Assembly (NCBI GenBank): GCA_002269645.1
Contig: NIVC01001035.1
Location: 1-64,000, forward strand
From: Macrostomum lignano
Lineage: Eukaryota
Length of the DNA stretch: 64,000 bases
Reading direction: 5' to 3'
The translations under genes were made by a program, and so were the position numbers. The notes below the pieces were generated by a model that saw nothing but the letters and a program-made list of their open reading frames with translations, was not told where the DNA came from and ran no database searches. Of this stretch, positions 7,618 to 50,052 are shown piece by piece. Numbering within the stretch: the first letter of the stretch is position 1; the number at the start of each line of letters is the position of its first letter.

Positions 7618-10600
7618 ATGTACAACATGAACAATCCTTATGGCATGCCGCCGCCTCAGCATATGGGCATGCCGCCTCCGCCACCGCCTCATCAAATGCC
7701 GCAAATGCAAATGCCGCCAATGATGATGCAGCATCAGCAACAGCAGCATCAGCAGCAGTACATGCCTCCTATGCCGCCTATGCATATGGCCTATCAGCAG
7801 ATGATGCAACAGCAGCCTCAGCATCACATGATGGCGCCGCCGCCAGTACAGTCTCCGATGTCTATGGCCGGTTTCCCTATGCAAATGCAGCAGCCGCCAA
7901 TGTCAATGCCAATGTCTACTATGCCTACTCAGATGCAGATGCCGCCGCCTGGGCAGATGTCTATGCCAGCAATGCCGATGTCTGTGCCGCCACCCGGTCA
8001 GCCAATCATGCATCAAATGCAGCAGCAGCGACCGATGCCTCCCACTTCTATGCCGCCGCCGCCGATGCAGTTTCCGACTCAGTCTCAGAGCAGTCAGCAG
8101 CAGCAGCAGCAGACGCCCGGATCTCAACAGCAGAATCCATCATATCAGCAGCAGTTGTCTTCAAGCTCAATGCCGTCAACTTTGCAGTCGTCACAACAGG
8201 TATCTATACCGTCAGTTGTTGCTGACTCAGCCGCTGCAGCCACCGTTGCGTCACCGATCGCTGTTGCGATGGAAACGCAGCAACAGCAGCGGCAGAACCA
8301 ACAGATACCGTCGCCTCCTCCATCGCCAACGTCAATCCTAGCAACAGACCACGTGTCGGCCTCGCAGACCACTCAGCAATACATTCAACAGAGTATATTT
8401 AAAAGTTATTCGCCAGATTTTCGAACCGTATTAAAAGAATTACATCCGCCTACGGCTGTTACTCATTGTTTATACTGTCGATTAATGTCGCCCAGAGACC
8501 AGCAGCTGCTAGTATTTAGCGGCCATCTGCTTCGTGTCTATCGCCTTGTAGAGGCCGGTACAGATGAACTTGGCGCCAATGCCGACGCCTCCCATAACAG
8601 CAGCGGCGGAGCAGCTCTTGACTTTGTCTACGGTGTTGAATTCTACTCACCCGTGCTAGATGCACTAGCCTTGCCAGCCACGTGTCTAGATAAACGCGAC
8701 TCGCTACTCTTAGCTTTTGAAGAGGCCAAATTGTCCGTTGTTGAATTCGACGATTCCACTAGAGAATTGCGGGCTACATCTTTGCACACGTACGAAGATG
8801 TCAAGTATAAAGATGCCAGACGCCAGTTCACCAGGCCGCCAATGCTTAGATTAGATCCGCAACGATCTTGCGTTGTTATGCTAGTCTATGACAAGCATCT
8901 GGCTGTGCTGCCGCTGCGCAGACAGCTAGTTGGCGTGCCCGAGCTCGACGCTAAACCAGCCGTTCTGCCGTCCTACGTTCTACCCTTATGGGATCAGGCT
9001 GAAGCTATTGTCAACGTAGCTGATGTACAGTTTCTTAATGGCTACTACGATCCGACTGTGTGCGTGTTGCACGAACCAATTGGCACTTGGAGTGGCCGGG
9101 TAACTGCTAGACACGACACTTACCGGATTACGGCTATGTCGCTAAATCCAAAGGATAGGGTGAGGCGATTGATTTTCTGATATTTTTATGGTACTGACCA
9201 CTTACCAGTAGGAGAAAAATGTATTTCCTAGGGTCTTCAAACTTTTTTACTTCGAGGGCCAGGTAGAGAACCTAGCGCATGACTGCGGGCCAGAGGATGG
9301 GAGAGTAGAAATGAGAGGAAGGGGGAGGGGAGGAGAGGAGAGAGCAGAGCAGAGAAAGAAGAGAAGGGGAGAGGAGGTAAGAGAAAGAGAGGATAAAAAA
9401 AGAGACGAGAAGGAGAAGAGAGAAGAGAGACGAGAAGGTAGAAGAGAAGAGATGAGAAGGTAGGAGAGAGGAGAGAGGAGAATGTAGGAGAGAAGAGAGA
9501 CTAGAAGGTAGAAGAGAAGAGATGAGAAGGTAGGAGAAAAGAGAGAGGAGAAGGTAGGAGAGAAGAGAGACGAGAAGGTAGGAGAGAAGAGATGAGAAGG
9601 TAGAAGAGAAGATATGAGAAGGTAGGAGAGAGGAGAGAGGAGAATGTAGGAGAGAAGAGAGACTAGAAGGTAGAAGAGAAGAGATGAGAAGGTAGGAGAG
9701 AAGAGATGAGAAGGTAGGAGAAAAGAGATGGGAGAAGGTAGGAGAGAAGAGAGACGAGAAGGTAGGAGAGAAGAGAGACGAGAAGGTAGGAGAGAAGAGA
9801 GAGGAGAAGGTAGGAGAGAAGAGAGACGAGAAGGTAGGATAGAAGAGAGAGGAGAAGGTAGGAGAGAAGAGAGAGGAGAAGGTAGGAGAGAAGAGAGACG
9901 AGAAGGTAGGATAGAAGAGAGAGGAGAAGGTAGGAGAGAAGAGAGACGAGAAGAGAGACGAGAAGGTAGGAGAGAAGAGATGAGAAGGTAGGAGAGAAGA
10001 GAGACGAGAAGGTAGGAGAAGAGAGAGAGAAGGTAGGAGAGAAGAGAGCTGAGAAGGCTAAATGTCCTGCAGGCCGAGCAGCTCAGCGATAAACCTGCTT
10101 GACTCTGGAGCCACGATCACAGCTGGTTCGAATCCGTTCGTAGTCACATTTGGTGATATTGTGCACTAGAAATTGGCCGAGACGATTAGAAAGTCAAGGA
10201 GCCGCTGTGCACCCTATGTGAGCGTGACTGTACAGAATTGGCGCTCTTGCATGTGCTCAGGATCCAGTGGAATGGACAGAATTGCCGTCAGCACTGGTTG
10301 CGGTATCAACTCATTCCTTCATTTTTCTCCCCGCAGACAAATCCAATAATCTGGTCTCAAGCCGGCCTACCATTCGATTGCTTCGCTCTGCTTCCAGTGC
10401 CCAAGCCGATTGGCGGCCTAGTTGTATTGGCCCGAAACAGCGTTATCTATCTGAATCAGAGCCAGAGACCCACCGGCTTAGCTTTGAATAGCAACATTAA
10501 TAATAGTACCAGCTTTCCATTGCGCAGAGTCTATCCGCCAACGCCTCGTCTGAGTCTGGACGGCGGCAAAGCAATATTCTTGCCAAACACTGGCGGCCGG

Positions 10601-13600
10601 CAATTCTTAGTTGGCGTACGAGACGGCAGTTTCTACGTGTTCACTCTGTACATCGACTCCGACATGCGCCAGTTGAACGGCTTCCACTGGGAGCCGGTCG
10701 GGAAATCTTCGCCGCTGTCTTGCTTTGCTATGCTAACAGCTATGGAAGCTGAGACTGCCGGCCTCACTATCGGAGCTAATCCGGCCGACGTCACTGATAG
10801 CGGCGGCATGTTGTTTGTTGGTTCGTTTGTGTCGGATTCCGAATTAGTCCGTTTAGTTGGCACCGGACCAATGCCAACGCCTGTGCAGTTTACTAATGGC
10901 GACGCGTCTGCCGCGGCCGCTGCACCGACAGCTCCGGCTACCCCGCCTCCGCCGCCGTCGCCTCCAACCATAGACGATGACGATGACAATGAGAATGTTG
11001 AAGAAGATGACGATATGCGGGATAATAGTAAAGCAACTGAGCACAATGATGAGGATGAAGGCGATGGAGATGCTAATGAAGAGCCTCAGAATCCTCAGAC
11101 CGATGAAGCTGATGTAGAAATCAAACAGGAAGAAGAGGACAATCATTCCGAAGCAACAGTCGCGAAACGGCGTCGTCTTGAATCGTCTTTCTCAAACACG
11201 TCGCTAGTGTCTCCTCCTCCTCATACTAGTGCTGCTCAGGACCAAGATGAGTCAGTGGACAAGCCAACTGTTAATCCGGCGGATTCCTTGAATGAGGACA
11301 GTCAACAGGCGCCGCCTTCGTTGATGTCGCAATCGTCCGTGACACCGTCCGAGCAGCAGCAGCAGCAGGAGGAGCCGCCTCAGCAGCCGCTTGGCGTGCC
11401 GCAGGTGTCCGATCCAGAGCTTGACGAAATCTACGAAACAGAAGAGGCGGCCAGCCAATCAGATCCGACTAAACGATTCCAATTAGATCGATGCGATTAT
11501 TTGCCAAATGTTGGGCCAATTGGCGAGCTCACGGCCGCTTATATACAGGGCATGTTCGATAATTTCCTAGTGAAAGAGTCGGCAAATCTTGAATTGTTAA
11601 CCTCCTATGGACACGCTGAGCACGGCGGTATTAACTTGTTGCAGCGCAGTGTTCGGCCTCTAATTCATTCTAGCTTTGAGATTCCCGACTGCTCAAGCCT
11701 GTGGTCACTCTACGGCGACAGGCGGCGGCCTTGGCAGTTCGAGAGCAACGCCGAAGAAGATGAGGAATGCGAAGGTCACGGCTATTTAGTGCTCAGTAGA
11801 GAGGAGACTAGTCTGGTGTTTCAGGTCACGGACGAAATTGCCGAGCTGGAGGATTCAGGATTTTCTACTAGCGAGCCTACTCTGTGGGCTGCGGATGTTG
11901 GCGACGATCTGAGCTTGCAGGTGAGCAGCATCACCTCCACCCTCCCAGATCCTCAGTTGCTGGGCCAGCCTCCCAGATCCTCAGTTGCTGGGCCAGCCTC
12001 TCAGACCTCAGTTGCTGGGCCAGCCTCCCAGATCCTCAGTTGCTGGGCCAGCCTCCCAGATCCTCAGTTGCTGGGCCAGCCTCCCAGATCCTCAGTTGCT
12101 GGGCCAGTCTCTCAGATCCACTGTTGCTGGGCCAGCCTCCCAGATCCTCAGTTGCTGGGCCAGCCTCCCAGTTCCTCAGTTGCTGGGCCAGCCTCCCAGA
12201 TCCTCAGTTGCTGGGCCAGCCTCCCAGATCCTCAGTTGCTGGGCCAGTCTCTCAGATCCACTGTTGCTGGGCCAGCCTCCCAGATCCTCAGTTGCTGGGC
12301 CAGCCTCCCAGATCCTCAGTTGCTGGGCCAGCCTCCCAGATCCTCAGTTGCTGGGTCACCAGCCTCCCAGATCCTCAGTTGCTGGGTCACCAGCCTCCCA
12401 GATCCTCAGTTGCTGGGTCACCAGCCTCCCAGATCCTCAGTTGCTGGGTCACCAGCCTCCCAGATCCTCAGTTGCTGGGTCACCAGCCTCCCAGATCCTC
12501 AGTTGCTGGGTCACCAGCCTCCCAGATCCTCAGTTGCTAGGCTAGCCTCCCAGATTCTCAGACAGTGCTTAAACTTACATGTACCTTTATACTGTCTTAA
12601 TCAGCTATCTCACTAACCCCCTCCAACTCCTCAGGTGTGCCCGTCCTCAGTCCGTCTCCTTCGCGGCAGCCAGCAGGTGCTGGTGCAGCCGTTAGAAGAG
12701 CGAGCCCGCCTAGTCACTGTCTGCGATCCGTTCGTCCTCATAGTAGACGAAACTGACGGCTTCCTACTGCTGGAGGTGATCGGCGAGACCCTCAGAACGG
12801 AGAGGCCAACAGTGCAGCAGTACAGCTTTGCCACCGCCATCGCCATCACGGATCATCCGTTCCTGCGCTTGCATAGGAAACCTACCGCTGCTGATGATGG
12901 CGCTGCCGATTTTGCCGACTCTGCTGCCACGGCCGCCGCTGCAACCTTCGATCCTCTAGAAGAAGAAGACGTCCTGCTGTATGGCGACGCTCTAAGCGAA
13001 CGCGCCCGCCGGCCAGCCGCTCCGCCGCCGCCGCCAACTTACGATTCAGATTGTCAAACAACTCACTGGGCAATTGTGTGCTACGAGAGCGGCGCGTTAG
13101 AGATTTATCAATTGCCTGATTTTGTTTGCTGCTTCGCTGCTAAAGCCTTCTCCGATGGGCCAAGGCTGGTCACGGATGCTAGTCTGTTCGCCGCTACACA
13201 GGTCGGCGCTGGCGGCATTGACACCGCGACTGGTGCCTCGCTTCCGACAGCTGCCGCCGCCGATGACGATGTGCCGCCAGAGGTCAGTTGTTAACAAAGT
13301 ACATTGCGGATTTTTTGACATTGTTGTAGGCAGGGGGGTTGTGTGCACTTTGGCGCACTTTAAGCGACATAGGCACACAACCGGCGAGAGGCATTGCTGC
13401 CCATTCCGCCGACTCCCCTGAGCAGGCATACAAGCGCGCGGATACGTACGCAGGCACACACTCACACAGGAGTGTACAGCGGCCCTAACTATATTATCGT
13501 TAGGCATGTACACTTCACTGCGCCTTGGGGGGTTGGCTCTCAAGGCCGTTAATTGCACGAGCAGAGCCAAGCCGAGATTCCAATTCAGCCCCAAATTAAT

Positions 13601-16600
13601 GTGACTGCACTTGGAATCGAGCCTGGGTCGCTGGCACACCAGAGCAGCTTCTTCTTCTTCTTCTTCGGGTCGCGGTCATTCTGGCTAGCCAATAGGACCG
13701 GGTGTCTAGCACCATGCAGCCAGGGCGCTGACTCCGTGCGGGCGGACAGTAGACGGCGGAGTCCAATTTGCGGCCTGCAGAGAGTGGCCACTAAGCGAGG
13801 GGACCCAGGTCCCGGTGTGCAGGGCTCCACTGCAGGGCGGCTTACGCTGTAAAAACCGCCGTCCACCGCCAACCCAGCGGAAGGGGACAGCTCCCCCAGG
13901 CTGCATACCCGGATGTGAGACCAATTCGTCACCCCGTCGATGGTAGGATCGCACGAAGCTCCTGCCACATTGGCGGGGTGTCCAGGGGCGCGACGTGGAC
14001 GCTGGTCTCGTGCCCCCTCGCGCACCAGAGCAGCTGCGCTACCGCTGGGCTACGCCCCCCCCCCTGGCATCCGTGATTCAGGCACTCTTCTCTCAGCATC
14101 CGTGATTCAGCACCCTTGCCTCAGCACCCCTGATTCAGTACTCTTGCCTCAGCATCCCTGATTCAGCACTCTTGCCTCAGCATCCGTGATTCAGCACTCT
14201 TGCCTCAGCACCCCTGATTCAGCACTCTTGCCTCAGCATCCGTGATTCAGCACCCTTGCCTCAGCATCCGTGATTCAGCACTCTTGCCTCAGCACCCCTG
14301 ATTCAGCACTCTTGCCTCAGCATCCGTGATTCAGCACTCTTGCCTCAGCATCCGTGATTCAGCACTCTTGCCTCAGCATCCCTGATTCAGCACTCTTGCC
14401 TCAGCATCCCTGATTCAGCACTCTTGCCTCAGCATCCCTGATTCAGCACTCTTGCCTCAGCACCCCTGATTCAGCACTCTTGCCTCAGCATCCGTGATTC
14501 AGCACTCTTGCCTCAGCACCCCTGATTCAGGCACTCTTCTCTCAGCATCCGTGATTCAGCACCCTTGCCTCAGCATCCGTGATTCAGCACTCTTGCCTCA
14601 GCATCCCTGATTCAGCACTCTTGCCTCAGCATCCCTGATTCAGCACTCTTGCCTCAGCACCCCTGATTCAGGCACTCTTGCCTCAGCATCCCTGATTCAG
14701 CACTCTTGCCTCAGCATCCCTGATTCAGCACTCTTGCCTCAGCATCCGTGATTCAGCACTCTTGCCTCAGCATCCCTGATTCAGCACTCTTGCCTCAGCA
14801 TCCGTGATTCAGCACTCTTGCCTCAGCATCCCTGATTCAGCACTCTTCCCTCAGCACCCCTGATTCAGGCACTCTTGCCTCAGCACCCCTGATTCAGCAC
14901 TCTTGCCTCAGCATCCGTGATTCAGCACTCTTGCCTCAGCATCCCTGATTCAGCACTCTTGCCTCAGCATCCGTGATTCAGCACTCTTGCCTCAGCATCC
15001 CTGATTCAGCACTCTTGCCTCAGCATCCGTGATTCAGCACTCTTGCCTCAGCATCCCTGATTCAGCACTCTTCCCTCAGCACCCCTGATTCAGGCACTCT
15101 TGCCTCAGCACCCCTGATTCAGCACTCTTGCCTCAGCATCCGTGATTCAGCACCCTTGCCTCAGCATCCGTGATTCAGCACTCTTGCCTCAGCATCCCTG
15201 ATTCAGCACTCTTGCCTCAGCATCCGTGATTCAGCACTCTTGCCTCAGCATCCCTGATTCAGCACTCTTGCCTCAGCATCCGTGATTCAGCACTCTTGCC
15301 TCAGCACCCCTGATTCAGGCACTCTTGCCTCAGCATCCCTGATTCAGCACTCTTGCCTCAGCATCCGTGATTCAGCACTCTTGCCTCAGCATCCCTGATT
15401 CAGCACTCTTGCCTCAGCACCCCTGATTCAGACACTCTTGTCTCAGCATCCCTGATTCAGCACTCTTGCCTCAGCAGCCCTGATTCAGCACTCTTGCCTC
15501 AGCATCCCTGATTCAGCACTCTTGCCTCAGCATCCCTGATTCAGACACTCTTGTCTCAGCATCCGTGATTCAGTATTGTTGGTATTCCCAGTAAAGCATC
15601 GCTCGGTGTGAGTAATTTTCAAGAAATCACCTCTAATAAGAGTTACATTATAGGCACAAATTCACTACAAAATAACAGCGGGCCGCTAAATCCTTGTCAG
15701 GTGGAAGAGCTCAGCTTAATGCCAATCGGGCGTCACCTTGACCGCCTGCTGCTGCTCTGTCGCAGTCGTGACGAAGTGTCGGCCTACGAGGCGTACCCGG
15801 CCCCGGCCTCCGATGTGGCCGCTCTGCCACCGGGCCGACTGGCAGTTCGTCTGCGCCGATTAGACGATCTGGGCGTGCTGCTGCGGACCGGCAAGAAGCC
15901 AAGCAAGCAGCGCCGAACTGGCAAGCAACAGCAGCAGCAACAATTGCTGCTTCAACAGCAATCTGAATTGCAACAGCAGCTGCATGGCAAGCACGCTAGG
16001 CTATTAGTGCCATTCGAAGACATTGGCGGCTATCGCGGCCTGTTTGTCGGCGGCGTTCGGCCGCATTTTCTAGTCGTGTCCCCGTCTGGTCAGGCCTACT
16101 CTCATCCTATGTTCGTCGACGGCTCAGTGTGCGCCTTCTCTCCATTTGACCGGCACTTCTGCCGGCACGGATTTCTCTATCTGACTCCCGAACGCGATTT
16201 GAGAGTAGCCAGCCTGCCAGATGACTATGATTATGCTTCGCCTTGGCCTAGGAAACGGGTGCCATTGGGCCGCACAGTGCACTGCGTACAGTTCCATCGG
16301 GCTACTAGCACTTATCTGGTGGCTAGCAGTGCGCCCGAACTTAGCAATGCCATCTGCCGGCTGTCGTCTGATGGCGATAAGGTACGGTTTATTACTGCTG
16401 CTGTCTTTTTACTTGTGATGTATTGCACCTCTTTTAGAGTCTCGGCATCTCTTATTAGTATTTAGTATTTGTTTCCGTTGTCTACCTCCCTTCTCTTCCC
16501 TCTCTTCGCCACCCCTCTCTCCTCTACCCCTCTTTTCTCTACCTCTCTCTCTTCTCTACCCTCCCTTTTCTACCCCTCTTTTCTCTACCCTCTCTCTCTT

Positions 16601-29749: not shown

Positions 29750-29850
29750 GACAACATCTGGGCCAATTTTCGTGCGCACAAGCCCCAAATTAATGTGGTC
29801 GCTCAAGGAATCGAACCAAGGGTCGCGGACTGCTCTGCCACCAGTGATAA
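29730..29850 (-). mobile_element. tRNA-derived SINE fragment (third copy)
   Basis: Reverse-complement B box GGAATCGAACC at 29807-29817; AGCCCCAAATTAATGTG is identical to the copy at ~13587. Confidence 0.6.
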
Positions 29851-34100: not shown

Positions 34101-37100
34101 GGTTATTCGCTTTATCATGAGGCCATTGATCTCTCACTGTCACACAGCCACTCTCACTGTCACACAGTCACTCTCACTGTCACACAGCCACTCTCACTGT
34201 CACACAGCCACTCTCACTGTCACACATCCATTCTCACTGTCACACAGCCACTCTCACTGTCACACAGCCATTCTCACTGTCACACAGCCACTCTCACTGT
34301 CACACAGCCACTCTCACTATCACACAGCCACTCTCACTGTCACACAGCCACTCTCACTATCACACAGCCACTCTCACTGTCACACAGCCATTCTCACTGT
34401 CACACAGCCACTCTCACTGTCACACAGCCACTCTAAATATCACACAGTCACTCTCACTATCACGCAGCCACTCTAACTATCACACTGCCACTCTCACTGT
34501 CACACAGCCACTCTCACTATCACACAGCCATTCTCACTGTCACACAGCCACTCTCACTATCACACAGTCACTCTCACTGTCACACAGCCACTCTCACTAT
34601 CACACAGCCACTCTCACTATCACACAGCCACTCTCACTATCACACAGCCACTCTCACTATCACACAGCCACTCTCACTATCACACAGCCACTCTCACTAT
34701 CACGCAGCCACTCTCACTATCACACAGCCACTCTCACTATCACACAGCCACTTTCACTATCACACAGCCACTCTTACTGTCACAGCCACTCTCACTATCA
34801 CACAGCCACTCTCACTATCACACAGCCACTCTCACTATCACGCAGCCACTCTCACTATCACACAGCCACTTTCACTATCACACAGTCACTCTCACTGTCA
34901 CACAGCCACTCTCACTATCACACAGCCACTCTCACTATCACACAGCCACTCTCACTATCACACAGCCACTCTCACTATCACACAGCCACTTTCACTATCA
35001 CACAGTCACTCTCACTGTCACACAGCCACTCTCACTATCACACAGCCACTCTCACTATCACACAGCCACTCTCACTATCACACAGCCACTCTCACTATCA
35101 CACAGCCACTCTCACTGTCACAGGGCCTCTCTCACTATCACCCAGCCACTCACGTGTCCCAGTGTGAGCAGCAGGTTTCCCGCCTGGCGGAGCCGCAGCA
35201 CTCAGTCTCGTCGATGCTGCTGCCGGGTTCCGGGCAGGTGAACCTCCCGTCCGCAGGCGGTACGGCCGACAGATTTACCCGGTCCTCGTGGAAGCAGGTG
35301 TCTGTGCGGGACAGGTTGGTTAGGCAATAGGTAGAAGTAGAGTAGACAATGGGTAGAAGTAGAGTAGACAATTGGGTAGAAGTAGAGTAGACAATTGGGT
35401 AGAAGTAGAGTAGACAATTGGGTAGAAGTAGAGTAGACAATTGGGTAGAAGTAGAGTAGACACTTGGGTAGAAGTAGAGTAGACAATGGGTAGAAGTAGA
35501 GTAGTCAATTGGGTAGAAGTAGAATAGACAATGGGTAGAAGTAGAGTAGACAATTGGGTAGAAGTAGAGTAGACAATTGGGTAGAAGTAGAGTAGACAAT
35601 GGGTAGAAGTAGAGTAGTCAATTGGGTAGAAGTAGAATAGATAATGGGTAGAAGTAGAGTAGACAATTGGGTAGAAGTAGAGTAGACAATGGGTAGAAGT
35701 AGAGTAGACAATTGGGTAGAAGTAGAGTAGACAAAGAGGTAAAAGTAGAGTAGACAATTGGGTAGAAGTAGAGTAGACAATTGGGTAGAAGTAGAGTAGG
35801 CAATGGGTAGAAGTAGAGTAGACAATGGGTAGAAGTAGAGTAGACAATGGGTAGAAGTAGAGTAGACAATGGGTAGAAGTAGAGTAGAAGTAGAAGTAGA
35901 GTAGAGGAGGACTTCCTGGAGAGACAGGACATGGTGTCGGCCAACACCAGATTCCGCAAGTCACCGGGCAGGCTCGCGACCTTCGTGGGCTGCAAGCGGA
36001 GGCGGCGGAACGCGCGCGGCCGGAACGCTACGCGGAGGCTGGCACAGCTCGACCACGTGCTTGTGCGCTTTCGTGAGCGCCGCCGCGTCACCAACTGCCA
36101 CACCATTACGCCGCTGGCTCTGCGGTCCGACCATCGGCTGCTCATCTGCGACCTTCGGCTTCGGGACCCGCTCTACCGTCCGCCAAAGCGGCCACCGCGG
36201 CGCTACTACCGCGCGCTCAGGGACGCCGAGACGCGACGTCGCTTTGCCGGTGCCTTTGTCACTGCGCTGGGCGACAAGCGTGGAGGAGCCGAGTACGCGG
36301 AGGTGAGCGCTGCAGTTCGAGCCGCTGCGGAGCAAGCAGTCCCGCTGATGCGACCGGCCCAGCGCGGGCAGCCGGTCTGGCAGGACGACCCCGCGATCGA
36401 CGAAGCGACGGAAGATCTGGAGAGGCTCCGACTGAGTGGGCGGCCAACTCGCGAGGCGGAGGAGGCTCTGGCGGCTGTCTACCTGCAGCGGCAGCAGTCC
36501 GCTGTCGATGACGCCATCCAAGCCGTCTCTGCCGCAGGGCCCGATGCCAGAGGGCGCGTGGCCTGGTCCGCCATCAACACTCTGACGGGGCGAAAGCGGC
36601 GCATCGCGCTCAACCTGGCAGGCGACACTCCGGATGAGCGCAGGAACGAGCTGCGCGAGTTCTTCGCCGCCATTGTCAACGCGCCGCCCCCTCCGCTTCC
36701 AGAAAATCTGAGGCTGCCGCCGGAGACGCCGTTGCCGGCGGAGGAGAGCTTCAATGTTGCCCCAGTCAGCACAGCCGACGTTGTGAAGTTCGCTCGGCAG
36801 TCGCCGGGCGGCAAAGCGCTTGGTCCGGACGAGGTGCCCACCGAGGCGCTGCGGATCCACTGCGTGGCCACTGAGGTCGCCAGAGTGATGAACCGCGTGC
36901 TTTTCGGTGAGGTGGCGCCAAATGAATGGACCACGGCGCACATCGTCGCCATTCCAAAGAAGCCGGGCACCACCAAGCTCGAGGAGCATCGAGGCATCTG
37001 CCTACAGTCCTGCGCCGCGAAGCTGTTCAACCGCATGCTGCTATCGCGGTTACAGCCTGTGCTGGACCCGTACCTGCGACCTGAGCAGAACGGATTCCGG

Positions 37101-40100
37101 CCCCATCGCGGCACAGTGACGCAGATCCTGGCTCTTCGACGAGTCATCGAGGAGGCGCGCATCCGCCAGTTGACCCTGATCCTGATCTTCGTCGATTTCA
37201 GGAAGGCTTTCGACTCGGTCGTGAGGGACGCGCTCCCAGAGGTGCTCCGTGCGTACAACGTGCCAGAGCTGCTGATTTCTGCTGTCATGGCGCTGTACCA
37301 CGGCACGACGGCTGCTGTCTCAACACCGGACGGCCTATCGGATTTCTTCGAGACATCCTCCGGGGTGCTCCAGGGAGATACGCTAGCGCCGTTCCTATTT
37401 ATTCTGGTGCTTGACTGGGTGCTACGGACTGCTCTGCCTTCCAACGACGACGGCTTCCTGCTGCGGCGACGCGTGGGTCGACGCCAACCGGAGAGACGGC
37501 TCAGCGTGCTTGGCTACGCCGATGACCTCGCCCTGCTGTCCTCGACCGTCGAGGGCGCCCAACGACAGCTGGATAGGCTGGTTGCCGTTGCGGCGAGCGT
37601 CGGCCTGGTGGTCAACACGCAGAAGACCGTCGTGCTATGCGTGCCGGACGACACCGAGGCTGGAATCTTCTGCCGAGGCGCTGACGGACAGGCGAGTGAG
37701 CTTCCAAGATGTCAGCAGTTCGTCTACCTCGGCGGTCTGGTTCCCGACGTTCGCGAGGATCTGCGGCGTCGCCGAGGACTTGCTTGGGCTGCCTTTCGTT
37801 CTATAAGGTCAGTCCTGCAGTCCGAGGCCCTACCGGACCGCCAGAGGGCGGCGCTGTTCCAGGCGGTGATCGAGACCGTCCTGTTATACAACGCCGAGAC
37901 CTGGACGCTGACAGACTCGCTCGAGGCTCAAGTCGACGCGGCGCACGCTGGCCTGCTGCGCGCCGCCTTCAAGATCGGCAACGAGCGAGTCACCAACACG
38001 GCGCTCTATCATCGCGCCGGCCTGGCCCGTCCTAGCGATCTGCTGCGCCGTCGGCGACTCCAGCTGGCAGGCCACGTCATCCGCGCCGAGGCCTACTGTC
38101 CGGAGCCGGTGCAGGAGGTGCTGCTACTTACGTTGCAGGCACCCTACCGGCGGGGACAGGCGAAGACTCGGCGCTACGTCGACTGTCTGCTGGCTGACGC
38201 CGGCGCCCCGGACTCTGCCGGCGGTGCGGCTTTTGTTCGCGCCCAAGCTTTGAAGCGCGCCATCTGACGCTGCTTTTGTGAACTGGCAGCGTACTCTGTT
38301 GTTGTTGTTGTTGTTAGAGTAGACAATGGGGTAGAAATAGAGTACACAGTGGGTACTCGAATTTAGTTGTTGAGAAGAGTGGCAGAGTAGAGAACAAAAG
38401 AGGTAAAGAGCTCACTGGCAGTTTTTCAGAGAAAAGTTGAACTGCGAGCTGCTTTGTCAAGGCCAGTTTTTTCACAAAAAGCATTTGTTAAGTCTATCAA
38501 AAATGCTTTTTGAGAGGATGGAATGACGAGATTGTAAATAATGCAGATGATTTACTGGAATTTCTCACTCCAGTGCTAGCCAGCAGCAGTCTGGCCCAGC
38601 TTCTAGGACAGTTGACACTTTTAATAGTAAAATTAGTCAAGTTTATTGCGCCATTATTGTGGGAAATTTCAGTTGTTTTGTAGCTTGTCTTAGCTAGCTC
38701 AGATAGATAGGATCGCTATTTATCTGGTTACTCGTCTACTCATCTAGCTACTCATCTACTCATCTAGCTACTCATCTACTCATCTAGCTACTCATCTACT
38801 CATCTAGCGTCTCATCTACTCATCTAGCTACTCATCCACTCATCTAGCGTCTCATCTACTCATCTACTCATCTAGCTACTCATCCACTCATCTAGCTACT
38901 CATCTACTCATCTAGCTACTTATCTACTCATCTAGCTACCCATCTATTATCAAAAGTACAGATTTTCAGTGAGAGTAAAAAATAGGCTGCATGCTTGAGA
39001 AATGCAATGCAATAAATAGATCAGAGTAAGTGTGCTTGCTGCATAACAGAACAGTAATGCACCTCACTAGGGAACTCACTCGCTAACAAGCCAAATCACC
39101 CCATCACCTGTCTACCTGCCTTGCCTTCCCAGTCTCTCTCTTGTGCTGACGCTAATCCAGAAAAGGGATTATAATTTACAATACCTGTAGCATTACTGTA
39201 ACATATAGTTCCCCAATTATATGAGAGGCACGTTAAGAGGACTTCAACCAGTGCCAACAGAGCTTTGATAAACCTGTCCAAGCCCCAATCTCCAGTCAGT
39301 CAGTCAGTCAGTCAGTCAGTCAGTCAGTCAGTCAGTCAGTCAGTCAGTCAGTCAGTCAGTCAGTCAGTCAGTCAGTCAGTCAGTCAGTCAGTCAGTCAGT
39401 CAGTCAGTCAGTCAGTCAGTCAGTCAGTCAGTCAGTCAGTCAGTCAGTCAGTCAGTCAGTCAGTCAGTCAGTCAGTCAGTCAGTCAGTCAGTCAGTCAGT
39501 CAGTCAGTCAGTCAGTCAGTCAGTCAGTCAGTCAGTCAGTCAGTCAGTCAGTCAGTCAGTCAGTCAGTCAGTCAGTCAGTCAGTCAGTCAGTCAGTCAGT
39601 CAGTCAGTCAGTCAGTCAGTCAGTCAGTCAGTCAGTCAGTCAGTCAGTCAGTCAGTCAGTCAGTCAGTCAGTCAGTCAGTCAGTCAGTCAGTCAGTCAGT
39701 CAGTCAGTCAGTCAGTCAGTCAGTCAGTCAGTCAGTCAGTCAGTCAGTCAGTCAGTCAGTCAGTCAGTCAGTCAGTCAGTCAGTCAGTCAGTCAGTCAGT
39801 CAGTCAGTCAGTCAGTCAGTCAGTCAGTCAGTCAGTCAGTCAGTCAGTCAGTCAGTCAGTCAGTCAGTCAGTCAGTCAGTCAGTCAGTCAGTCAGTCAGT
39901 CAGTCAGTCAGTCAGTCAGTCAGTCAGTCAGTCAGTCAGTCAGTCAGTCAGTCAGTCAGTCAGTTAGTCAGTCAGTTAGTCAGTCAGTCAGTCAGTCAGT
40001 CAGTCAGTCAGTCAGTCAGTCAGTCAGTCAGTCAGTCAGTCAGTCAGTCAGTCAGTCAGTCAGTCAGTCAGTCAGTCAGTCAGTCAGTCAGTCAGTCAGT

Positions 40101-40513
40101 CAGTCAGTCAGTCAGTCAGTCAGTCAGTCAGTCAGTCAGTCAGTCAGTCAGTCAGTCAGTCAGTCAGTCAGTCAGTCAGTCAGTCAGTCAGTCAGTCAGT
40201 CAGTCAGTCAGTCAGTCAGTCAGTCAGTCAGTCAGTCAGTCAGTCAGTCAGTCAGGCAGGCAGTCAGGCAGTCAGTCAGTCAGTCAGTCAGTCAGTCAGG
40301 CAGTCAGGCAGTCAGTCAGTCAGTCAGTCAGTCAGTCAGTCAGTCAGTCAGGCAGTCAGGCAGTCAGTCAGTCAGTCAGTCAGTCAGTCAGTCAGTCAGT
40401 GATCACTCACGATTGTCAGCAGGGCTGTCAGCAGTGGCAGGTGCAGCTTCAGCGGTAGTCAAGTGGCCACAGATCCTGTGTAATATGAACAAAAACCACA
40501 AAAGATGCAACAT
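30967..40513 (-). CDS. Shisa-like type I membrane protein; complement(join(30967..31541,32031..32303,33898..34097,35154..35301,40411..40513)), 432 aa
   Basis: Signal peptide MLHLLWFLFILHRICG, Cys motif C..F.CP...ECCG...TCC, TM WAIGIGITVAIVIFMALGYTI, then a cytoplasmic tail with Q16. Phases match at all introns only if the AAG acceptor at 34097 is used rather than CAG at 34090. Confidence 0.7.
31558..31995. repeat. 21-bp minisatellite (GGGTGAGATTTTGGTGGCTTT), intronic
   Basis: Read directly. Confidence 0.93.
32305..32695. repeat. ~21-22-bp repeat (GAGAGTGACAGGGGTGATGGG), intronic
   Basis: Read directly; runs into the acceptor site. Confidence 0.88.
33372..33882. repeat. 12-bp repeat (GAGCTACTGTCT), intronic
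   Basis: About 40 copies. Confidence 0.95.
34128..35150. repeat. 20-bp minisatellite (CACACAGCCACTCTCACTRT), intronic
   Basis: About 50 copies. Confidence 0.95.
35325..35905. repeat. 22/23-bp minisatellite (GGGTAGAAGTAGAGTAGACAAT[T])
   Basis: Read directly; degenerate copies resume after the LINE at ~38316. Confidence 0.93.
35906..38314 (+). mobile_element. RTE-type non-LTR retrotransposon, 5'-truncated inside the APE endonuclease, (TGT)n tail
   Basis: Open ORF 35931..38267; short 3' UTR; (TGT)6 tail; probable 9-bp TSD TAGAGTAGA at 35897-35905 and 38315-38323. Confidence 0.9.
35931..38267 (+). CDS. LINE endonuclease (C-terminal part) plus reverse transcriptase, 778 aa
   Basis: APE tail LDHVL..SDHR; RT motifs IPKKP, EQNGFR, FVDFRKAFDSV, GVLQGDTLAPFLF, YADD, FVYLG; the frame stays open upstream to 35907 (EDFLERQD). 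Confidence 0.93.
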   Translation: MVSANTRFRKSPGRLATFVGCKRRRRNARGRNATRRLAQLDHVLVRFRERRRVTNCHTITPLALRSDHRLLICDLRLRDPLYRPPKRPPRRYYRALRDAETRRRFAGAFVTALGDKRGGAEYAEVSAAVRAAAEQAVPLMRPAQRGQPVWQDDPAIDEATEDLERLRLSGRPTREAEEALAAVYLQRQQSAVDDAIQAVSAAGPDARGRVAWSAINTLTGRKRRIALNLAGDTPDERRNELREFFAAIVNAPPPPLPENLRLPPETPLPAEESFNVAPVSTADVVKFARQSPGGKALGPDEVPTEALRIHCVATEVARVMNRVLFGEVAPNEWTTAHIVAIPKKPGTTKLEEHRGICLQSCAAKLFNRMLLSRLQPVLDPYLRPEQNGFRPHRGTVTQILALRRVIEEARIRQLTLILIFVDFRKAFDSVVRDALPEVLRAYNVPELLISAVMALYHGTTAAVSTPDGLSDFFETSSGVLQGDTLAPFLFILVLDWVLRTALPSNDDGFLLRRRVGRRQPERRLSVLGYADDLALLSSTVEGAQRQLDRLVAVAASVGLVVNTQKTVVLCVPDDTEAGIFCRGADGQASELPRCQQFVYLGGLVPDVREDLRRRRGLAWAAFRSIRSVLQSEALPDRQRAALFQAVIETVLLYNAETWTLTDSLEAQVDAAHAGLLRAAFKIGNERVTNTALYHRAGLARPSDLLRRRRLQLAGHVIRAEAYCPEPVQEVLLLTLQAPYRRGQAKTRRYVDCLLADAGAPDSAGGAAFVRAQALKRAI
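38745..38950. repeat. 20-bp repeat (CTCATCTAGCTACTCATCTA)
   Basis: Read directly. Confidence 0.88.
39294..40400. repeat. (CAGT)n microsatellite, ~1.1 kb
   Basis: Perfect for ~670 bp, with few variants afterwards. Confidence 0.98.
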
Positions 40514-43936: not shown

Positions 43937-46900
43937 CAGGGAAGCCTCTTTGTTCGCCTCGCTCACCAGGAAGCGACACTCACATGGCCCCTTCGTCCCC
44001 ACCTCCTCTACAAGTTTAGTCTCGTTTTGGGAACTTGGGAAGCAAAGAATTTTTGTCCTTCGTTTACTGTACACTGAATTACTCTCATATCTTTTCTATT
44101 CAAATATGTTATGCCTATATCTTCTTGTGCAGGATATCATTTAGGCAGCAAAAAACAACTGATATCAACTCACTCTAAGCAATTCTCTGATTTTCTAAAC
44201 TCTAATTTTTTAATCGAACATTTGCATAATACATCATGGGATACAAGTGCTGTGTTCCAGCTTGTGTTACTAGTTTGCCTCGGTATAAGAAGGACCCGAC
44301 TGTTTCCATCCACAAGTTTCCTTCTCTCGAGAATCTGGATCTGCTGAACAAGTGGATCGCTACAATTCCTCGACAATGGACTGAGGCCGAGCTGTGTAAG
44401 CTGCGGTCTGACCCAAGTCACAACTATCGGGTTTGCTCTCTGCATTTTCCAGGTAAGTTTTTGTGACTGTCTCTGCGGATTCCAACCCAAATCGCAAAAG
44501 GCTGGCAGCTGACGATCAATTGACTGCTATTGCTAAGCTGAAAAACCGGCGTCTGACAGATGATGCTGTGCCGTGCATCTTCCCGAATTTTGCATCCTAC
44601 TTGAGCAAGGCCGTCCCGGAAGAGAGGCAAACGGTTTGTACATCGGCTGAGAGCCGTCGAGAGAACGACATTCAGCATTGCGAGGTAGAAGCAGAGAAGC
44701 TTCTACAAAAGGATGTGATTTCTGACTTCCACGCTATTGGGCCATACGATCTACCAGATCATCTAAGGTGCTTTTTCAAGGTGATCTCTGAATCGAGTGT
44801 AACCTTTTTTACAACTAGAATGTCCGGTGCCGGCAACTTGGAGATCGCCACATCGCTGAATGTTGGCCAAGAGCTGCTTTTTGAGGTCACAGTTGGTGGT
44901 GATAAGCAAGCCTCTTTTGCTGGAGATCTGGTAGCTGATGGCAGTCTTAAAACCTTTGCCCAACTTGAAAACATCCTAGCTAGGCTAAAAAATGTCCGTT
45001 TGGAAGATTGCCGGCATGGTTATGAGGTGCACCTCTTACTAGCTCAGGAGGCAGTCACGAAAGCTATCACCGACTTGTCAGCTAAGTTTGAAGTCAAGAG
45101 TGATCAAGAGCTGGATACATCCATTGAGGAGGCTGCTTTTGCTAAACTGAATTTTCTTGTCGAGCAGCTAAGCTTTTCGAGTTTGAAGAAGGGGAAGCTA
45201 ACATACTCTAGCGAGCTACTTGCTTTTTCATACCTGTTGCAGCACCACAGCCCATCAGCGTACAATTTCATTCGGAAATCCAACACAGTCAACCTCCCAA
45301 GTGTTAGGCATCTGCAGAGGCTTTCTTCCGGACTCGCCAAAACTGTGTGCGCTTTTTTGATCAAGTTGCTGCATGGAGACTTCCAGGAAGCAATTTCTCT
45401 TATTCCAAAAAGTAGGCTTAGTGCTCTGGACTTGCAAAATCACCTCACTGACTGCCTTGCTCTGCTTGATCGGGTTCACCTGAGGTCAGTGGTGTGCATT
45501 GTTGACAACAATGCAGTGAATAGGAGCCTCTTTCAAGGTCTTCTATGCAAAGGCAAGCTGCAATCGTCAATTCCGAATCCGGTGTCTGGCGAGCCGCTGT
45601 TCCTTCTGTTCGACCCTGTACACAACTTTAAGAACATCTTGAACAATTGGATTTCGCGTCAGGTGTTTCAATTTCCGGACTTCACCGATCTCCAGAAAAT
45701 CCAAACAGCAGATTTTCGCGATTTGCACAAACTTCATGAACAAGAACTTGGGCAACCAGCTCGGATCGCCTTTCAACTGAATACAAGGTCCTTGAATCCA
45801 ACGAACCTGGAGAAAACTAATGTTCAGCACGCAGCCAGCATCTTCAGTGAGTCTACTGTAGAAGCAGCAAAGTTCTACCATTTTTCCTCTGGCTTGTTAG
45901 CTTTCCTAGCACTCATTCTTAACATGTGGACGATCTGGAATGTCAAGACCACTAGGAAAGCGAAGGAAAAGCGGCTTCCCGACGCCGCTCCGCTGGTGCC
46001 AAACGACCACCGCCTCGACAAGCTGCGCCAGTTTGCTGCTTTCTTCCAACGTTGGGAGGATTCGAAGTTGCCCGGCTTGACTGCTCCCACTTTCCTGGCT
46101 GTTGAGTCCTGCTGTCTCACTCTTGCTGATCTTTCCGAGCACCTTTTCTCTAGGTATTTATTTCCCTCTGTTTTGACAGGTAGGATAGTCAGTGACTGGA
46201 TCGAGCGGCGCTTTGGTCGCTACCGCCAGTTTCACGGAGGCAACTATTTTGTTTCTGTCCGGCAGATCCTTCAAGCCGAGAAGAAAATTCGCGTTTCCAG
46301 CCTGCTTCAGTTTCATGGCCTTGGACTGAAAGATTTAAAAATTCTTGACCAGGCGAGTTCATCCGAGTTTTTTTAATCCACTCTTATCCGTGAAGCTTCC
46401 AGGTCTCCAGCATCTTGACGCCGCTCTTACATCTAGTGACCGAAACATTTGTTCCTATCTTGGTGGCTACGTGTCTAAAGCTCTATGCGGCCAGCTGCAT
46501 GAAGTGCACTGACTGCAAGAATCTTCTACTTACTAACGATTACTTGGAGTTTATTGCCGAAGAGGACTCTGCTGACGACTTTGCCCTGATTCAAATGCGT
46601 GACCGAGGCGGTCTGAAGTGCCCCAGCAAATTCGTATTTTTCTTTTGAAGGCATCCTACTTCATGTTTGGACATCTGCGAGATCTTCTCACCTCTGGTAA
46701 TTTAGTTCAAAATATTGTTGAGCTCTGCCAGGACTACGTGAGCGAATCCACTGATTTTACGACCCTTCCAAGCCGGACTTGCAGTTGTGAAAAGGCAGCT
46801 GCTACTCTTTCTTCGCGGATCTTTATTCCTGCAGTCCGGATTTATCTAAAGAATTTTGTCAATGAGACAAACGATAAGAAGGCGAAGAACCAGAAGGCGA

Positions 46901-48848: not shown

Positions 48849-49384
48849 ATTTGGCGGATATATATGCACTAGAAAACGTGGGTAGCACCGGTGTGTGCAA
48901 TAAAATAATTAGTTTGAAAACCTCACGTCCAGAACTATTACTTATTAATGCAATTACTCGCATTGTACACTACAACGATGTAGTCGATCACAGTTAATAA
49001 TTCACTGTTTATTTACAAGATATTTTTCACAGGAATAAGAAACAAAACACGATAAAGTACAATATCAAGGTCAAATAAGCACATGAATACTATGCTATTA
49101 CCGTATATGGTAATCAGCTGATTTATTTCTTTCATAGAATTTTTTCAAATGTAACGATAGAAGCAAATTTGTTAAAATCAGATCTAAGAACAAATTAATA
49201 TACATATTACAGGCCTTTTTTGTTAAATCAACTTTGCAAACTGGCTAATCGGTAGCTAATCAGTTCGACACAGACTGATAGACTGTAAACAATGCAATGT
49301 TCACTTGAAAGACGGCTGACAAAAGCGCGCGTGATACAATCGTCTGGGGTGGGAACAGCAAACATGGGGTGCGATGGGCACGCA

Positions 49385-49557
49385 CAGGCAGGCAGACAGA
49401 CAGACAGACAGACAGACAGTCACAGAGACAGACAGACAGACAGACAGACATAAAGACAGACAGTCACAGAGACAGACAGACAGACAGTCACAGAGAGTCA
49501 GACAGACAGACAGTCACAGAGAGTCAGAGACAGACAGACAGACAGACAGACAGTCAC

Positions 49558-49588
<31 letters not shown>

Positions 49589-49611
49589 TAAAGACAGACA
49601 GTCACAGAGTC

Positions 49612-49658
<47 letters not shown>

Positions 49659-49815
49659 GTCACAGAGACGGACAGACAGACAGTCACAGATAGTCAGAGA
49701 CAGACAGACACATACAGACAGACAGACAGACAGACAGTCACAGAGACGGACAGACAGACAGTCACAGATAGTCAGAGACAGACAGACACATACAGACAGA
49801 CAGACAGACAGTCAC

Positions 49816-49846
<31 letters not shown>

Positions 49847-49964
49847 GTAAGACAGGCAGACACATACATACAGACAGATAGACAGACAGACACATACATA
49901 CAGAACATACAGACAGACAGACAGACAAACAGTAAGACAGGCAGACACTAAGACACTAAGACAC

Positions 49965-50051
<87 letters not shown>

Positions 50052-50052
50052 G
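49385..50052. repeat. (GACA)n-based compound microsatellite
   Basis: Read directly. Confidence 0.93.

Follow-up and report, generated by a model that had tools for sequence, protein, structure and literature searches.

A short non-coding retroposon with a predicted HDV-like ribozyme at its 5′ end in an intron of Macrostomum lignano

We analysed a 64,000-nucleotide stretch of the Macrostomum lignano genome (assembly GCA_002269645.1, contig NIVC01001035.1, positions 1 to 64,000 of the forward strand), referred to here as the window, and found in an intron of a CPSF1 homologue a single 373-nt insert at 13650–14022 on the minus strand. The insert is flanked by a perfect target-site duplication (TSD), ends in a pure GAA microsatellite, begins with a complete fold of the hepatitis delta virus (HDV)-like ribozyme class, and has neither an RNA polymerase III (Pol III) promoter nor coding capacity. 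We consider it probable that this is a recent copy, made by target-primed reverse transcription (TPRT), of a short, non-coding, promoterless and ribozyme-processed non-autonomous retroposon of the non-LTR type (without long terminal repeats, LTRs) that was mobilised in trans. The putative layout of 5′ ribozyme, short body and 3′ recognition end is that of the SIDE and NARTc elements.

Results

Boundaries of the insert

Two copies of the 13-bp sequence CACCAGAGCAGCT (plus strand) bound the insert, one at 13637–13649 beside its 3′ tail and the other at 14023–14035 beside its 5′ end, and a direct coordinate check found them identical at 13 of 13 positions. Read on the minus strand, the target sequence runs to GGTAGCGC, followed by the 13-nt AGCTGCTCTGGTG (14035–14023), the insert (14022–13650), the same 13 nt again (13649–13637), and the target resuming with TGCCAGCGACCC. 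On this strand the insert begins with CGCGA, the predicted cleavage site and GGGGGCACGAGACCAGCGTCCACGTCGCGCCCCTGG, and it finishes with GACCGCGACCC(GAA)5GA. Its 3′ region, within the last 60–100 nt, reads UGGCUAGCCAGAAUGACCGCGACCC(GAA)n, and its terminus is GAAGAAGAAGAAGAAGA at 13666–13650, a (GAA)5GA microsatellite whose following A is common to the tail and the TSD. Counted with this shared A, the tail is a pure (GAA)6, equivalent to (AAG)5–6, and it is the sole run of at least four GAA units in the window. An earlier note on this DNA had described an insert of about 370 bp within a perfect 13-bp TSD, with an (AAG)6 tail and a 5′ end lying five nucleotides, CGCGA, upstream of a predicted ribozyme cleavage site, and each of these points was borne out with correct coordinates.

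A TSD combined with a simple-repeat 3′ tail is the signature of non-LTR insertion, and the insert is a product of TPRT. That the TSD is perfect, the tail pure and the helices described below free of mismatches indicates that the insertion is young and, by extension, that a source copy elsewhere was active recently. The G+C content of the insert is 64.6%, versus 47.5% for the whole window.

The 5-nt leader CGCGA (14018–14022, minus strand) separates the TSD from the predicted cleavage site, which is followed by G14017. The leader was probably added at the 5′ junction as extra nucleotides, and is compatible with the non-templated additions that are documented at the 5′ junctions of R2 and the R2 SIDEs (PMC3414825). 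It is also complementary to UCGCG in L3/P3 of the ribozyme, a match that is statistically not significant, and it matches the start of CGCGACCC. The 7-mer GCGACCC directly before the tail (13667–13673, minus strand) recurs in the target at 13618–13624 (minus strand), 5 nt past the TSD. The recurrence and the leader matches are probably coincidental (roughly 2–10% by chance), although microhomology at integration, or an alternative pairing inhibitory to the ribozyme, might lie behind them.

An HDV-like ribozyme fold at the 5′ end

The 101 nt at 13917–14017 (minus strand) adopt an HDV-like self-cleaving ribozyme fold, with predicted cleavage 5′ of G14017. The P1 5′ strand GGGGGC (14012–14017) pairs with GCCCCU (13989–13984) over 6 bp, placing a G1·U wobble between G14017 and U13984 at the cleavage site, as in HDV-like ribozymes generally. 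J1/2 is AC. The pseudoknotted P2 is formed by seven Watson–Crick pairs between GAGACCA (14003–14009) and UGGUCUC (13923–13917), and the 3-bp P3 (GCG/CGC) closes the 7-nt loop L3, UCCACGU (13990–14002). Two Cs of this C-rich loop pair with GG at 13983–13982, just after P1, to form P1.1. The 7-bp P4 stem (CACCCCG/CGGGGUG; 13930–13980) encloses a 37-nt structured insert, and J4/2, ACGAAU (13924–13929), holds the predicted catalytic cytosine C13928 in the CGAA context found around HDV C75 and in CPEB3. The nested double pseudoknot is complete, with P1, P1.1, P2, P3 and P4 in canonical order and zero mismatches, and it has both the C-rich L3 with P1.1 and the J4/2 cytosine that mark HDV-like ribozymes.

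We scanned both strands of the window with a structural descriptor that demands P1, P1.1, P2, P3, P4, the G·U pair and the J4/2 cytosine jointly, and it matched this site only. The same descriptor returned no match in 60 block-shuffled windows or in 60 random sequences of 64 kb at the element's 65% G+C (120 × 64 kb, about 15 Mb). These results uphold the predicted ribozyme fold that the earlier note had placed at the 5′ end of the element. At gathering thresholds, Rfam reported nothing in the whole window. Under permissive settings the CPEB3_ribozyme model (RF00622) aligned end to end at 23.1 bits versus a gathering score of 35 (E = 0.0012 when scanned locally and 0.11 over the whole window), the top match of 4227 Rfam families in the window, and no other family of the HDV fold class matched even at E ≤ 10. 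Because these models are lineage-specific, the sub-threshold score weakens membership of those Rfam families and not of the fold class. The fold class is well supported, and self-cleavage is predicted from the modelled structure.

The strongest argument for processing is positional. The 5′ boundary, defined independently by the TSD, lies 5 nt from the predicted scission, which suggests that the template RNA ended at the cleavage site. An uncleaved read-through template is disfavoured, since its copy would carry arbitrary upstream sequence.

A non-coding body lacking a Pol III promoter

Between ribozyme and tail lies a G+C-rich non-coding body (13667–13916, minus strand) that matches neither proteins nor the RTE loci examined (see below), and the whole element showed no blastx similarity to 293 collected proteins, 120 of them RTE-type. 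One sense-strand frame is open through the whole insert, giving a 146-aa open reading frame (ORF; 14025–13585) that had no homologue in a 5.8-billion-protein collection and no meaningful Pfam match; an exact look-up of an 82-aa internal ORF found nothing on record. We regard the 146-aa frame as fortuitous, because the chance of such a frame, estimated from the element's base composition, is about 4% per frame. The claim that the element has no credible ORF therefore stands, with the qualification that one frame does cross the insert.

The body had also been called hairpin-rich, and the hairpins listed in support of this exist, but a 243-nt body segment folds only marginally better than its shuffles (z = −2.0; 6 of 200 fold as well). 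A 10-nt palindrome, UGGCUAGCCA (13682–13691, minus strand), lies 16 nt upstream of the tail and, by analogy, is a candidate 3′ stem-loop for recognition by a reverse transcriptase (RT).

We found no properly spaced pair of Pol III A and B boxes within the element, in agreement with the earlier note; there is one A-box-like site (1 mismatch) without a matching B box. Runs of five Ts are Pol III terminator signals, and the T5 run on the sense strand at 13851–13855 (minus strand) speaks against the full element being a Pol III transcript. The internal Pol III promoter of canonical short interspersed nuclear elements (SINEs), carried in a tRNA, 7SL or 5S head, is absent. With this and the T5 run, the SINE label first given to the element is too loose, and the SIDE or NARTc type is the nearer one.

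Insertion site and host gene

The interrupted target is a tRNA-like or SINE-like sequence spanning 13560–14066 on the minus strand (13560–13649 plus 14036–14066). It has an A-box-like TAGCCCAGCGG 5′ of the insert and a B-box-like GGCTCGATTCC 3′ of it, on the same strand and each with 1 mismatch from the consensus, and the latter is followed by a conserved CACATTAATTTGGGGCT. A second, diverged and partial copy of the target sequence lies 16 kb away at 29781–29826 (minus strand); ARAGORN called no tRNA at either place. The alignment of this copy covers positions 54–98 of the reconstructed site and starts a few nucleotides 3′ of the insertion point, within the 3′ flank only, so that it shows the flank to be a repeated SINE-like sequence and does not serve as an empty-site comparison. 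We considered the flanking boxes as a Pol III head of the element itself, but the TSD shows them to belong to the target, and we rejected the idea; the paralogous sequence at 29781–29826, which has no associated insert, also counters it.

The element lies in an intron (13187–15700, plus strand) of a homologue of CPSF1 (CPSF160) whose exons are at approximately 8425–9177, 10334–10852, 11393–12223, 12632–13186 and 15701–16186 (plus strand), and it is antisense to the gene. The host transcript would therefore carry the complement of the ribozyme and remain uncut, and this copy would not be expressed from the host promoter. The CPSF1 homologue (about 8425–16186, plus strand) has unusually long exons, and its introns consist mostly of minisatellite arrays. 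It is about 37% identical overall (at most 45% over the best segments) to its best relatives, which come from assorted metazoans, and no close orthologue was found in the protein collections searched.

Search for further copies and for a partner LINE

When the window was searched by BLASTN with the element, no further copy came up. We also scanned metagenome, prokaryote-genome and viral collections, which probably do not include the M. lignano genome, for exact matches to the 20-nt catalytic core. The 42 matches in these three DNA collections reach no more than a few bases past the seed, have no P1 5′ strand upstream, fail the descriptor and lie mostly in G+C-rich sequence; we take them to be chance matches. 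Positions 1279–1306 of metagenome contig Ga0209149_1089167 (L010) align over 28 nt with the P3/L3/P1 core at 96% identity, and a P2-like pairing, GTGACA/TGTCAC, may flank this stretch; an upstream P1 strand is lacking, and we judged this match, too, to be due to chance.

The window does contain a long interspersed nuclear element (LINE), at approximately 35905–38315 (plus strand). It is 5′-truncated, related to the RTE type, and encodes an apurinic/apyrimidinic endonuclease (APE) and RT, the latter in an intact 778-aa frame at 35931–38267. This LINE has a (GTT)n tail, is inserted in a 23-bp minisatellite, and has a G+C content of 65.5% and an observed/expected CpG ratio of 1.13. Its RT shares 97% identity with UniRef proteins from M. 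lignano, which points to M. lignano or a very close relative as the source of the window, and an exact look-up of the ORF found nothing on record. The genome hosts recently active APE- and RT-encoding LINEs with microsatellite tails.

We compared the element with seven related RTE loci, from marine and other metagenomes, one Logan assembly and one NCBI assembly (L043–L049). The 3′ junction is visible in two of the seven, both of which end in (GTT)n, and the seven loci have neither an HDV-like motif by the descriptor nor nucleotide similarity to the element. The autonomous LINE that the earlier note had proposed to seek, sharing the 5′ ribozyme and the 3′ terminus, was accordingly not found among them, and the resemblance to RTE termini expected of an RTE-dependent element was seen neither with these loci nor with the RTE-type proteins. 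These comparisons neither support nor refute the mobilisation by an RTE-like RT that the earlier note had inferred.

The full-length RTE relatives (L043 1–430, L045 1–310, L047 and L048 1–520, L049 1–435) share a motif in the 5′ untranslated region (UTR), GCGGCTGCCAATGGCGGC or GCGGCTACCAATACC, which resembles parts of the twister ribozyme. The 5′ ends of flatworm RTEs have been published as bearing twister variants (PMC8501958, PMC7761336); no twister model in Rfam matched the motif, which is a tentative lead. In L047 (1–115), L048 (1–30) and L049 (1–100), from JGI and Logan samples, a 17–19-bp tandem repeat (TTCAGTTTGTCTAATTT and similar) directly precedes the RTE copy. Together with the position of the window LINE in a minisatellite, such neighbours may reflect a target preference for tandem repeats.

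Other features of the window

Minisatellites are extremely dense in the window (71 rows in TRF output), with periods of mostly 12–47 bp and arrays of up to 1.8 kb, and the M. lignano genome is described as rich in tandem repeats (PMC5730564). Long (CAGT)n and (ACAG)n tracts occupy 39293–40400 and 49384–50052. A 637-aa ORF at 44463–46376 (plus strand) has transposase domains of the P-element/THAP9 type (a Tnp_P_element helix-turn-helix and, weakly, a TNP-like GTP-binding insertion domain).

Discussion

Proposed mechanism and its alternatives

We propose that a source copy of the element would be transcribed within a longer RNA polymerase II read-through transcript, and that self-cleavage by the ribozyme would trim the 5′ end of the element RNA. 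A LINE-encoded endonuclease and RT would then recognise the 3′ end, presumably through the stem-loop and the (GAA)n tail, and copy the RNA into a nicked target by TPRT, leaving the 13-bp TSD and about five extra nucleotides at the 5′ junction. Several points weigh against this account. Only one copy was found in the 64-kb window; the element's open frame, as translated, retrieved no relatives from the 5.8-billion-protein collection, exact-word scans of three collections yielded chance matches only, and none of the RTE loci examined is an autonomous partner sharing either end. On the side of the RNA, the Rfam score falls short of the gathering threshold, self-cleavage is a prediction from the modelled fold, the structure of the body is barely better than chance, and the 5′ end of the insert lies 5 nt upstream of the cleavage site and not exactly at it.

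The main rival explanation is that the insert is a one-off, dead-on-arrival product of an autonomous LINE that has this ribozyme in its 5′ UTR and this 3′ end as its 3′ UTR, arising from an internally deleted or template-switched cDNA that founded no propagating family. An internal deletion would be expected to leave a 5′ ribozyme abutting a 3′ end, the R2 SIDEs are thought to have begun in this way (PMC3414825), and the single copy in the window and the fruitless protein search with the open frame fit an isolated event. However, the blastx comparison detected no remnant of APE or RT coding in the 250-nt body, and no LINE with matching ends is present among the RTE loci examined. We therefore regard this explanation as rather unlikely. 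It differs from our preferred reading, a retroposon mobilised in trans, only in whether the short form propagates.

The predicted ribozyme itself admits two further explanations. The insert could be a retrocopy, or processed pseudogene, of a host non-coding transcript with an HDV-like ribozyme that was copied opportunistically by a LINE RT. HDV-like ribozymes do occur in host genes such as CPEB3 (PMC6765202), and CPEB3 is the top Rfam match here; but the tail consists of a (GAA)n microsatellite instead of poly(A), the position of the ribozyme at the 5′ end is that seen in ribozyme-terminated retroelements, and the G+C content resembles that of the window LINE and not the background, so that we find this origin improbable. 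More improbable again is a fortuitous or inactive fold in an ordinary short retroposon whose 5′ end was set by, for example, the transcription start or RT fall-off. The low Rfam score, a P1 of 6 bp where 7 is usual, the 5-nt offset of the 5′ end and the reliance on a structure predicted from one copy would all be in keeping with it, yet a descriptor that demands all features jointly found nothing in about 15 Mb of control sequence, and its single match in the window falls 5 nt from a boundary that was defined independently.

Beyond the single insert, we suggest more tentatively, as a possibility that we place short of probable, that this copy belongs to a multi-copy, active family of Macrostomum retroposons with an HDV-like ribozyme as head and (GAA)n as tail; it would be the first family of this kind described in flatworms and would coexist with RTE LINEs that have no HDV-like 5′ motif. 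The partner LINE of such a family may belong to a clade that has not yet been linked to HDV-like ribozymes.

Significance

Ribozyme-headed non-autonomous elements have already been published (PMC3414825, PMC3185411, PMC3383444, PMC6765202), and the concept is unchanged by our finding, a clean example of an established element type that would not surprise specialists. Our literature search found no paper linking Macrostomum to ribozymes. The published repeat annotation of M. lignano dropped unclassified repeat models (PMC5730564), and the element is probably unannotated for this reason.

If the family is real, it would extend ribozyme-terminated non-autonomous retroposons beyond the rDNA-specific insect SIDEs and the trypanosome NARTc elements to a dispersed element with a microsatellite tail in a free-living flatworm, a model for which transgenesis is available. 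It would provide a compact natural HDV-like ribozyme of 101 nt with a perfect core for biochemistry, and would point to a class of repeats lost in the standard annotation of this genome. It would also show how such elements are placed in host genes, here in the antisense orientation that leaves the CPSF1 pre-mRNA uncut. Should the Macrostomum family exist, more than one strategy for forming the 5′ ends of non-LTR retroelements would operate in one genome.

Comparison with known systems

The closest parallels are the R2 SIDEs and R2/R1 hybrid SIDEs of Drosophila (PMC3414825), which are likewise short (about 0.5 kb), non-coding and promoterless. The R2 SIDEs retain only the self-cleaving 5′ ribozyme and the 3′ end (PMC3414825). 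They depend on co-transcription and combine an HDV-like 5′ ribozyme with a LINE-type 3′ end, as we propose for the element, and they are mobilised in trans by TPRT, as the element probably was, with variable extra nucleotides at the 5′ junction (PMC3414825). The differences are that SIDEs are site-specific in 28S ribosomal DNA (rDNA) whereas the element occupies a non-rDNA site in the intron of a gene, that R2Dwi_SIDE has a poly(A) end, as does its parent R2, whereas the element ends in (GAA)n, and that SIDEs, unlike the element, have recognisable parents in R2 and R1.

NARTc and the RIME/SIDER relatives of L1Tc/ingi in trypanosomatids (PMC3185411, PMC3383444, PMC4035085) are also non-autonomous non-LTR elements, and are dispersed. 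Their first 77 or so nucleotides form an HDV-like ribozyme that frees their RNA from longer co-transcripts, much like the release proposed here. In trypanosomatids, however, these 77 nt double as an internal promoter (Pr77), whereas the element is promoterless; the host, unlike that of the element, is a protist with polycistronic transcription, and we saw no sequence relationship between this group and the element.

Among autonomous LINEs, HDV-like ribozymes occur in RTE and Baggins elements of insects and in R2 (Ruminski et al. 2011, summarised in PMC6765202). Like the element, ribozyme-terminated LINEs have the ribozyme at their extreme 5′ end, lack a promoter of their own and lie within introns or downstream of other elements, and RTEs share its microsatellite type of tail; in contrast, these LINEs encode APE and RT and the element encodes nothing. 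The RTE lineage that we inspected in and around this genome, with its (GTT)n tails and no HDV-like motif, is unlike the ribozyme-terminated RTEs.

The mammalian CPEB3 ribozyme (RF00622) has a near-identical P1/P3/L3 core, GGGGGC..AGCGU(C/U)CACGUCGCG..CCCCUG, with CGAAU in J4/2. It is a single-copy intronic ribozyme of the host in mammals, its P2 and P4 are unrelated to those of the element, and the resemblance is one of fold class and not of family membership.

Hammerhead or HDV-like ribozymes are carried by LINEs and by non-autonomous SINEs in diverse metazoans (reviewed in PMC6765202), and two cases come from the same phylum as Macrostomum. The Perere-3/SR RTEs of Schistosoma have twister variants (PMC8501958) where the element has the HDV-like class, and the SINE-like elements of schistosomes have hammerheads and, unlike the element, are apparently transcribed by Pol III (PMC6765202). 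Across these ribozyme-bearing retroposons of flatworms the logic is shared, in that the RNA has its 5′ end set by a self-cleaving ribozyme.

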